Counted from the first letter of the whole stretch, positions 27,116 to 29,637 are shown. The stretch: 63,980 bases of DNA, filler included, from Olpidium bornovanus S191 (GCA_017911155.1; 27 parts of 27 records of this genome joined end to end with filler, not necessarily neighbours in it); one strand, 5' to 3'. Numbers and translations are program-made. Notes: generated by a model not told the origin, from the letters alone.

Positions 27116-27974
27116 TTTTCATTTTTTCACAATGAGCCATGTGAACGCACTACCTAGAGATGCAACGCGCACACACCTTTGACGCCGCCTGTAAGCCACT
27201 CCTCCATAAAGCGGGCGTGTTCCACATACTGTCAGTCGCATGGAGAACTGCAGAATTCCAGACCCTTCCAGATCCAGAACCAAAACCCAGACCCAGAGCA
27301 AGAACTTGTCAATACGAATGCCAGAGTTTACCCTGGTATTTTCTGCGAACAAATGACAGAGTTTAAGGTTAAGTTTAAGCTTCAAAAAAAGAAGGAAGCC
27401 GCTGATCGGCATTCTTGATTTTTATCCCTTATGGTGTGGAGAGGTGTGTTTTTCTGGTATGCGCCCCTTGCGCTTTGGGGCGGGAGTGGTTCCGTTCTGG
27501 CGTGGGGTAGGATCTGTCGGGTTCCCCTGGCGCTCCGGAGATGCGCGTCCCAATCGGGCCTCTCTCCTGTGCGCCCTTGGCCTCTTTCTGCCGCTGATGG
27601 CCGCTCTCCCACGGGAAGGAGACGGGAACAAAGTTCGGGTGGCAGACAAATTACGTGGCGCCATACGTATATATACGTAACATCCGCATGNNNNNNNNNN
27701 NNNNNNNNNNNNNNNNNNNNNNNNNNNNNNNNNNTTAATTAATTAANNNNNNNNNNNNNNNNNNNNNNNNNNNNNNNNNNNNNNNNNNNNAAGGTGCGCC
27801 TACACCGTGGTGTGGCCCTTGCCCCCGTCACACGACCCACATGGGCCCACCCACGTAGGGCGCCCACGCAGGGGGGCCCACATGCTCAGAGGGCCCACGC
27901 AAAGGGGGCCCGCACGCTCGATGCCCGCATGCAGAACTGTTCCCCCATGAAACTGTCTCCGCGCGGAACCCCAC

Positions 27975-28140
27975 ACGGCGCGCCCATGCCCGGCACGCCC
28001 ATGCCCGGCACGCCCCGCCCGGAGCGCCCCACACAGTGGGCCCATGCCCGGCGCGCCCATGCCCGGCACGCCCCACGCGGAGCGCACATGCCTGGCGCGC
28101 CCATGCCCGGCAAGCCCCGCCCGGAGCGTCCCACATGACG
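27975..28140 (+). repeat. GC-rich minisatellite with a 15-bp core GCCCATGCCCGGCAC and higher-order variants
   Basis: Repeated gcccatgcccggc(a/g)c interspersed with ccccgcccggagcg. Confidence 0.85.
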
Positions 28141-28200
28141 CGCCCCGCACGACAAGCCCACACACGATGAGGGCGCGGCTGTGCTCACACCCGCGCTGCG

Positions 28201-28544
28201 TGTATATAAGGCGCGCTATTGCATAACTGAGATGAAGGAAGGCAGGTTTTCAAGGCGGCGCAGGGCCTTATATTCGTGGGACGGTTTATGCAAAGAGTGG
28301 GCAAGTACGCGTCAAAAGAAAGAGGAAGGAGAGAGTAGGCTGCCTTTCGCGTGGGTTCGCACGCGTCTAGGGGAGGAAAGAAGAGGCCTACGCGTAGTAC
28401 AAAATTGCCTCGTGGCAACCGGCCTCCCACTCTTCTGCAATAGTTGGAATTCTATGCTCGGTTTCTAGAATATAATGTGCGGCTTTTGGTTTCCTCACGG
28501 CTTCTCCGGTTTTTCCCTCGTACCCTTCATTCCCCTTCACTACA
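28201..28544 (-). mobile_element. Candidate 3' LTR (344 bp, TGTA..TACA termini) with a PPT-like GGGGGGCGGC immediately upstream on the minus strand
   Basis: Inverted 4-bp termini; same position relative to the shared repeat as 7444-7804. Confidence 0.45.
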
Positions 28545-28711
28545 GCCGCCCCCCGTGACTGAAGAGCTTTTTTCGGCAGTCACGGTGTATCACGTGGCTG
28601 ACAGCTTTTTTGATTTTTAACGAGTCGGATTTGGCTCCACCAACGCCACTTGCCCCGTTCCATTACCCCGAACTCCAGTCTCTGCCGCGTCCACCCGTCC
28701 ACCCAGCCACA

Positions 28712-29561
28712 ATGTCGTCCTCTGCGTCCGCTGCCCCTGCATCCACCCCGTCCGTCTTCACCGAGAGGCGTCTCCACGCCGCCACCCGTCGGATATACAC
28801 GGCCTTCTGGGCGCACCGGTTGCGAGACTCCCGCAGTTTGCTCGCAGCCGCAGCTGCGTGCGTTGCCGCTCGACCGACGCCAGAACGTCAATGCACTCTG
28901 CGCAGGCGGATGATCCGGTTCATCCATTACGCGTGGAGGTTTTGCGCCGTCCACGAGGACAGAAGTACCGAAGCCTGCGTTGCCCTTCTCCAGTCAGTTC
29001 TGGTCCCTCCTTCGTATTGCAACTCCACTCTGATAGATAACCTCTTCCACGTCTACTTGTAGACTCTGCTGATCAATGATTGACGCCTTCTTCCAGGTCA
29101 TGAATTGGCCAGCCTCCCTTTGGCTTCCCGCGGATCCTCGCGATTTGGATTTCCTGTTCCTGCCGTCAGACACGCAGTATTGTGGCCCCGGCGGCCCCGA
29201 AGATCGCGACTACGATCCGCGCCCCGCTCCCGTCGCCGATGACAGTTATATTCAGGTCCGCGTTCTCATGCGCCTGGTTTCCCCGCCACAACCAGATGCC
29301 GAACTCCCCGACGATGCCCCGGCCACCATCTCTCCCCGCGCTCGGAATTCCTGGTTCCCCGAGCTCCGCCAAAGTGCCGAGTCCTATAATTTTCTCCCCC
29401 GGCTCGCGGTCGCACGAGAGGACCCTCCCATCGACATGTCCCGGGTCGATCATTTCGCACTAAGACCCATTCTCCGGGTTCAATGGTTCGTTCCCGTGTT
29501 GTTCGGGCTAAGTCCACCATCTCCTTTGCCTTTTCCCGTTCTTCCTCCAGTCGCTCCTTAG
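28712..29561 (+). pseudogene. Copy 2 of the spliced unknown gene (exon 1 28712-28992, intron 28993-29062, exon 2 29063-29561) with an in-frame TGA at 29070-29072
   Basis: Exon 1 (281 nt) and intron (70 nt) have the same lengths as in copy 1; GTCAGT..TTGTAG splice sites. Confidence 0.7.
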
Positions 29562-29637
29562 CCCGTTCAAGGTCGACTTCCCGTCTTTCTAGCTGCCTGA
29601 ACCGCAACGCAATAAGCTCATTTGTCGTACAGCCATC
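29266..29637 (-). mobile_element. Ty3/gypsy integrase C-terminus (GPY/F-like domain), overlapping the plus-strand gene
   Basis: LERAKERLEEEREKAKEMVDLARTTRERTIEPGEWVLVRNDRPGTCRWEGPLVR..ENY follows the coiled coil + G(D/E)xVLV..RWxGP(Y/F) pattern. Confidence 0.7.

Follow-up and report, generated by a model that had tools for sequence, protein, structure and literature searches.

To our knowledge, antisense extra genes are widespread in LTR retrotransposons and none of them has a known function. In spliced HBZ of HTLV-1 the first exon is located in the LTR, and a role as nuclear regulators has been proposed for retroviral antisense proteins. In plants, an antisense frame between pol and the 3' LTR (aORF-3R) is found in maize Grande (gene23), rice RIRE2 and Silene Retand (TRP28) (PMC7264820, PMC11963269). 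These plant frames are present in most copies of a family and lie in a long region between pol and the LTR. Their function is not established, and a regulatory role has been proposed for the proteins of Grande gene23 and Retand TRP28 (PMC7264820, PMC11963269). For fungi, PMC7264820 and PMC8365987 cite brtn, an antisense extra gene of a Boty-like Ty3/gypsy element of Botrytis cinerea (Zhao et al. 2011, Virology 417:248).

The locus analyzed here is from the zoosporic, root-parasitic fungus Olpidium bornovanus. Comparison with related loci indicates that it is very likely a deleted, dead copy of a Ty3/gypsy element with an element-borne, two-exon antisense gene. The initial annotation had regarded the locus as a candidate for a new kind of system. 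This view was abandoned because antisense extra ORFs at the same position have already been described (PMC7264820, PMC8365987).

Layout of the copy

The window is a stretch of 63,980 nucleotides (filler included) in which 27 parts of 27 records of assembly GCA_017911155.1 (strain S191) are joined end to end, and all positions are counted from its first nucleotide. The analyzed piece covers positions 27791–29637 (1,847 bp). GCA_017911155.1 was obtained by binning a metagenome of non-axenic zoospores (PMC7865070), and its assignment to Olpidium rests on the binning by the depositors. The element is located on the minus strand. Two further copies from the O. bornovanus assembly, L007 and L018, serve as the main references. 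The features of the piece are as follows.

27791–28200, no strand: flank outside the element, 70–77% GC, with tandem repeats at 27969–28133
28201–28544 (344 bp), minus strand: putative 3' LTR, TGTA...TACA, about 84–88% identical to L007 435–779 from 28215 on
28545–28554, minus strand: polypurine-tract-like G run GGGGGGCGGC, abutting the LTR on the upstream side (element strand) and conserved in L007
28555–28711, plus strand: leader from the polypurine tract to the ATG of the antisense gene; 28545–28711 is 93% identical to L007
28712–28992, plus strand: predicted exon 1 of the antisense gene, 93 codons and 2 nt, open in this copy
28993–29062 (70 nt), plus strand: predicted phase-2 intron, GTCAGT...TAG, at a position shared with relatives
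29063–29450, plus strand: predicted exon 2, conserved core only, truncated at 29450
29070–29072, plus strand: in-frame TGA that breaks the spliced frame; L007 and L012 are open here
29446–29449, no strand: deletion junction with the 4-nt microhomology TCGA; 1,213 bp are kept in L007 and L018
29451–29561, plus strand: read-through tail of the plus ORF, antisense of integrase DNA, without homology to the gene family
29446–29637, minus strand: integrase C-terminal fragment (..ELIALR.RQLERRE.DL...IEPGEWVLVRND), bounded by the edge of the piece (29637) and the deletion (29446)
29266–29445, minus strand: spurious 'GPY/F' frame, an antisense reading of exon 2 that stays open

A polypurine tract followed by a TGTA..TACA block had been proposed for this region, and both are present: GGGGGGCGGC (28554–28545) is directly followed by positions 28544–28201, which comprise 344 bp. 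The GC content falls to ~0.51–0.54 inside this block, with the edge at 28201. The homology to L007 ends 14 bp inside the proposed outer end of the LTR. A single LTR-like block is present, and no 5' LTR lies in the piece. The flank (27791–28200) has no match among the fetched loci. Its repeats at 27969–28133 have nested periods of 15, 44 and 58 nt and a GC content of ~75% and lie just beyond the LTR-like block. They could be host satellite DNA or a piece of another element.

The motif TATATAA is found at 28203–28209 (plus strand), at the extreme outer edge of the LTR block and ~500 nt 5' of the ATG of the antisense gene. In the related locus L013, TATAAAAG is located ~55 nt 5' of the corresponding ATG.

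Open reading frames extend over 28610–29062 and 29076–29561 on the plus strand and over 29266–29637 on the minus strand, the latter reaching the edge of the piece. None of the ORFs of the piece has a Pfam match with E values up to 10.

Integrase fragment and element type

The peptide read from 29637–29446 (minus strand) matches L001, a metagenome contig, with E 5e-22 and L002 with E 5e-13 (42% identity) in tblastn searches. The window copy retains 64 integrase codons. The tail of L001 has weak matches to SH3_Tf2-1 (E 0.0046) and to the MLV IN C-terminal domain. P0014, the integrase of L018, contains the core motif ..TTPYNPGANGKVEQ.. and is named 'Integrase catalytic domain-containing protein' in UniRef. 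An ORF of 1,124 aa in L002 comprises RVT_1, RT_RNaseH_2 and Integrase_H2C2 in that order; the ORF upstream matches DUF4100 with E 1.8e-05, which is below the Pfam cut-off. The integrase homology and the order RT, RNase H and integrase in L002 support the Ty3/gypsy type given in the initial annotation.

A metagenome search with the integrase tail yielded five gypsy loci (L002–L006), and the antisense gene is absent from all five. Clear integrase C-terminal tails were also seen in the metagenomic ORFs P0055, P0057, P0063, P0078 and P0109, which carry the JGI names 'translation initiation factor IF-1' or 'SufB'. These names are probably automatic misannotations.

Internal deletion and apparent overlap of gene and integrase

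Positions 28215–29449 of the window align with L007 435–1685, and positions 29446–29515 align with L007 2895–2964. The two alignments meet at the shared four nucleotides TCGA; thus, the window copy lacks 1,213 bp of L007. This region is kept in the O. bornovanus contig L018, where positions 1682–513 match L007 1770–2964. L018 also matches window positions 29448–29637 at 94.7% DNA identity. The gene of L007 ends at 2175; the integrase tail of that copy carries two stops and lies on the opposite strand at ~2703–2963. The stop codons of gene and integrase are 243 bp apart in the distant relative L001. In all three loci the gene and the integrase converge without overlapping.

As an alternative to a deletion in the window copy, a duplication in L001 or L007 was considered and rejected. 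The extra DNA is present in three independent copies, loop and tail are normal in the outgroup integrases of L002 and L005, and in all other members the gene family runs past SRVD.

The last ~100 codons of the plus-strand protein had been described as overlapping the integrase frame. This overlap was not borne out, since the family homology of the plus ORF stops at 29450 and the integrase homology begins at 29446. The minus-strand frame 29266–29637 had likewise been read as the GPY/F C-terminus of an integrase. The part from 29637 to 29446 is indeed integrase, whereas 29266–29445 is the antisense of exon 2. The true GPY/F tail is seen in P0014, in which VLVRND is followed by QIFNEFWTELKLWPRWFGPYVV...YVLRELDG; the true tail of the family reads RWFGPYVV..YVLRELDG. 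In the window copy this SH3-like/GPY-F module is deleted and only its first strand, GEWVLVRND, is left.

An antisense gene built to overlap the GPY/F coding region, with the window copy showing the native arrangement, would agree with several features of the piece. Both frames are open across 29266–29561, the minus frame contains R-W-x-G-P-x-V and G..Y spaced like GPY/F modules, and BLAST carries the integrase alignment through 29266–29445. The peptide of 29266–29445 alone, however, reaches only E 0.073 against the tail of L001. The same peptide ('RWEGPLV..GGENYR') can be read from L007 1502–1705 (minus strand), where it is detached from the integrase, and the equivalent frame of L001 has stops. 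Furthermore, the substitutions mark the plus frame only: 14 of the 19 differences between the window copy and L007 in 29266–29449 are located at position 3 of the plus frame, which is position 2 of the minus frame. Both sister copies and L001 are non-overlapping and have the real tail elsewhere, and the plus ORF loses its family homology exactly at the junction. An overlap by design is thus extremely unlikely. On the alignments described above, the gene/integrase overlap and the 'GPY/F' motif are artefacts of a 1.2-kb internal deletion in this copy. With the deletion and the TGA at 29070–29072, the gene of the window copy is a pseudogene and the copy is dead.

Exon-intron structure of the antisense gene

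A two-exon protein of ~259 aa had been predicted on the plus strand. The exon-intron structure was confirmed, but the frame is not open, as a TGA is located three codons past the acceptor. The predicted splice sites are CCA/GTCAGT (donor) and TTGTAG/A (acceptor), and exon 1 joins exon 2 in frame. The protein encoded by exon 1 is 58% identical to L008 1–234 (E 3e-26) and contains the motifs FW.HR.R and RR..I.F...WRF...LL. A phase-2 intron of the GT..AG type is located at the identical codon in six diverged lineages. The introns of the relatives are listed below.

L007: donor GTCAGT, 70 nt
L008/L012: donor GTAAGT, 70 nt
L013: donor GTGAGT, 73 nt
L010: donor GTGAGG, 70 nt
L011: donor GTATGT, 94 nt
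L009: donor GTAATG, 85 nt
L017: donor GTATGT, 67 nt

The motif L/M-R-R-x-x-I directly past the acceptor is conserved in the family alignment. L015 and L016 have their intron six codons upstream (~419–485) and in phase 0. An apparent second intron follows ..FDPR (past 668) in these two loci; intron positions therefore vary within the family.

L014 (291–701, ENA ERZ27282702) is intronless, and its sequence ..CWRYRG....SVLLQ-LRRSAIEVY.. spans the predicted junction. Since L014 reads straight across, the predicted junction is independently confirmed. A frameshift is present within exon 1 of L014, which would itself be a spliced transcript if its assembly were cDNA.

The spliced ORFs are intact in L012 (412 aa), L013 (~235 aa) and L010 (~355–370 aa). 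A TGA is found in exon 1 of L007 and also of L009. The stop in L007 is a CGA-to-TGA difference at a CpG. Between the window copy and L007, 78 of the 105 mismatches in 28215–29449 are transitions, mostly C/T. The prevalence of C/T mismatches and the stop at a CpG fit a methylation-linked decay of the copies. At L007 2215–2235, AAAACAAAATAATAAAAAAA is found soon after the stop of the antisense gene (AATAATAAAAAAA stretch) and is a possible plus-strand polyadenylation signal.

Protein family

The 161-aa ORF retrieved one relative in a word search, P0001 (52% identity), which is encoded on the metagenome contig L001. The family profile was built from two sequences, the ORF of the window copy and P0001, and was searched against 1.84 billion representatives. 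Eleven proteins were matched. One of these, P0011 (1641 aa), was rejected as an unrelated repeat protein, and ~10 related clusters remain after its removal. Two members, KAG5462423.1 and KAG5462209.1, are annotated as 'hypothetical protein' of O. bornovanus (GCA_017911155.1). The remaining members are derived from soil and other metagenome assemblies and from Logan contigs. No relatives in other sequenced fungi were found in the profile search of the 1.84 billion representatives.

The family protein comprises ~235–410 residues: exon 1 encodes a basic, helical N-terminus, and a conserved core is followed by a tail that is usually rich in Ser, Thr, Pro and Ala (55–79% S/T/P/A/G). The invariant core, which is encoded by exon 2, is FLFLPSD.QYCGP.GP.D..YDPR..P.ADD, followed by WFP, YN.L and SRV(D/Q).G, with SRVD in the window copy. 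Past SRVD the members have a G-centered stretch, in the closest of them QGQ.RS.NF, that the window copy lacks. Conservation of the protein reaches down to 34–59% identity with the invariant motifs kept. No hydrophobic segment was found in the family protein. This and the composition of the tail suggest that the protein is soluble.

A metagenome locus search with the gene profile gave 213 pattern matches, none of which was confirmed. There was no match in a word search with exon 1 or in a profile search of the PDB, and no usable match in a feature search of the ESM Atlas. Pfam showed no family for P0001 with E values up to 10. The AlphaFold2 model of the exon-2 domain (12-row alignment) has a pLDDT of 47.7 and is too poor to use. 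As judged by these sequence searches, the family is an orphan protein family.

KAG5462423.1 (P0002, 541 aa) spans both a gene fragment (L007 239–432) and the LTR and uses the wrong frame of exon 1. As it reads through the fragment and the LTR, it is a chimeric prediction. For annotation, this deposited chimera and the frame at 29266–29445 are instructive, the latter because it shows that a GPY/F motif can be mimicked by an antisense frame that happens to be open.

Selection on the plus frame

The spliced coding sequences of the window copy and L007 (90% DNA identity) give dN 0.041, dS 0.250 and dN/dS 0.17, with 12, 9 and 34 differences at the first, second and third codon positions, respectively. 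Within 29076–29449, 22 of the 33 mismatches are at the third codon position. For more distant pairs dS is saturated and the ratios range from 0.16 to 0.42. These comparisons support an antisense gene that is conserved in several element lineages and is under purifying selection.

Origin of the antisense gene

The gene is located between the integrase and the 3' LTR, antisense to pol, in the window copy, L007, L018 (tail only) and L001. The comparison of the family and its intron supports the proposal that an intron-containing antisense gene of an unrecognized family lies between pol and the 3' LTR. The window copy, L007, L018 and the distant L001 all show convergent pairing of gene and integrase. 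The identity of L001 to the window copy is 52% in the gene and ~49% in the integrase, and L001 has an open integrase ORF. The O. bornovanus assembly contains at least four copies of the family, namely the window copy, L007, the fragment at L007 239–432 and L018, in addition to the divergent L009. The fragment at L007 239–432 (JAEFCI010002162.1) is inverted and shares 92% identity with the window copy and 86% with L007's own gene; it adjoins the LTR at a point 14 bp inside the proposed LTR end. Either a nested insertion or a chimeric assembly accounts for it.

Downstream of the gene, no pol is detectable in 1.1 kb of L010 and in 0.9 kb of L013. Either some copies lie outside a recognizable element or these are degraded copies. 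A putative RT remnant in L010 (2857–3117, minus strand) was rejected, as it has neither a Pfam match nor tblastx support.

The missing pol within ~1 kb downstream in L010 and L013 would be expected if the two-exon gene were an ordinary Olpidium host gene beside retrotransposon debris. The TATAAAAG that L013 has of its own ~55 nt 5' of the ATG and an intron as in host genes point in the same direction. Against a host gene, the pairing with integrase recurs in the window copy, L007 and L018 on the one hand and L001 on the other, although synonymous sites are saturated between them and the integrase of L001 is still open. The gene is multi-copy in one genome, where fragments also occur nested in other copies, and is placed between the polypurine tract and LTR on one side and the integrase on the other. 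No LTR can be located between gene and integrase in L001, because the spacer of 243 bp is too short, and the profile search showed relatives to be lacking in every other sequenced fungus. A host gene is thus improbable, and we consider it very likely from the sequence comparisons that the antisense gene is element-borne.

It could also be argued that the plus ORFs are chance frames, as long ORFs on both strands are expected from GC-rich DNA, or that the antisense RNA alone matters, in a control by dsRNA or siRNA. Antisense non-coding transcripts are known in other retroelements (PMC7264820). Neither suggestion accounts for a protein that is conserved down to 34–59% identity with invariant motifs, for the dN/dS of 0.17 or for the conserved position and phase of the intron, and we regard both as having hardly any probability. 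An RNA role may exist alongside the protein.

Proposed history and function

The piece very probably represents the 3' part of an internally deleted Ty3/gypsy copy on the minus strand, from O. bornovanus or a very close relative. In intact relatives, pol with the integrase is followed by a spacer of ~0.25–0.55 kb, the antisense gene in opposite orientation (exon 2, intron, exon 1), the polypurine tract and the 3' LTR. The 1,213-bp deletion at TCGA took away the C-terminal third of the gene together with the spacer and the genuine SH3/GPY-F tail of the integrase. Both coding regions were thereby fused tail to tail, with frames that stay open across the junction by chance. The TGA at 29070–29072 disables the gene further.

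In functional copies, plus-strand transcription would start within or close to the 3' LTR, and the transcript would then be spliced and translated to a soluble protein. From general retroelement biology we infer that the intron passes to new copies: as it lies antisense to the genomic RNA, splicing cannot strip it from the reverse-transcribed template. An antisense intron surviving retrotransposition would be a natural counterpart of the antisense-intron cassettes used as reporters of retrotransposition.

By analogy, the protein could act for the element as an accessory regulator, e.g. in the nucleus, but this assignment is rather doubtful. Slightly less tentative is the idea that an Olpidium-like Ty3/gypsy lineage has long carried its own intron-containing antisense orphan gene and needs or uses it. 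If so, the gene may regulate expression of the element or counter host silencing, the intron would be kept because it is on the non-genomic strand, and L014 would be a rare retro-copy of a spliced antisense mRNA or a case of intron loss. The small, well-defined orphan protein with its sharp invariant motifs is suited to expression and localization studies.

Comparison with known antisense genes

The Olpidium gene has the same place and orientation as the aORF-3R of plants, antisense to gag-pol. It differs from these in belonging to another host kingdom (Olpidiomycota) and in having a conserved spliceosomal intron; the word intron is absent from the texts describing the plant frames (PMC7264820, PMC11963269). 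Unlike the TRP28 proteins of Retand and Grande, it has neither Transposase_28 (PF04195) nor any other Pfam match.

As far as brtn is described in the papers citing it, both genes are extra antisense genes of a fungal Ty3/gypsy element. The Olpidium profile matched no protein of Botrytis or other ascomycetes among the 1.84 billion representatives. The two genes are probably unrelated.

HTLV-1 HBZ likewise lies antisense at the 3' end of a retroelement and contains an intron, which survives replication because it is on the non-genomic strand. In contrast to HBZ, the Olpidium protein has no bZIP or other recognized Pfam domain, and both Olpidium exons are located within the internal region.

The copy in the window is itself an ordinary degraded transposon. 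The gene family to which it belongs provides a case from an early-diverging fungus with unusually clean coding evidence, namely intron position and phase, an intronless variant and a dN/dS of 0.17. Compared with the systems described above, three features are new: a host from the Olpidiomycota, an orphan family of proteins and conservation of the intron.
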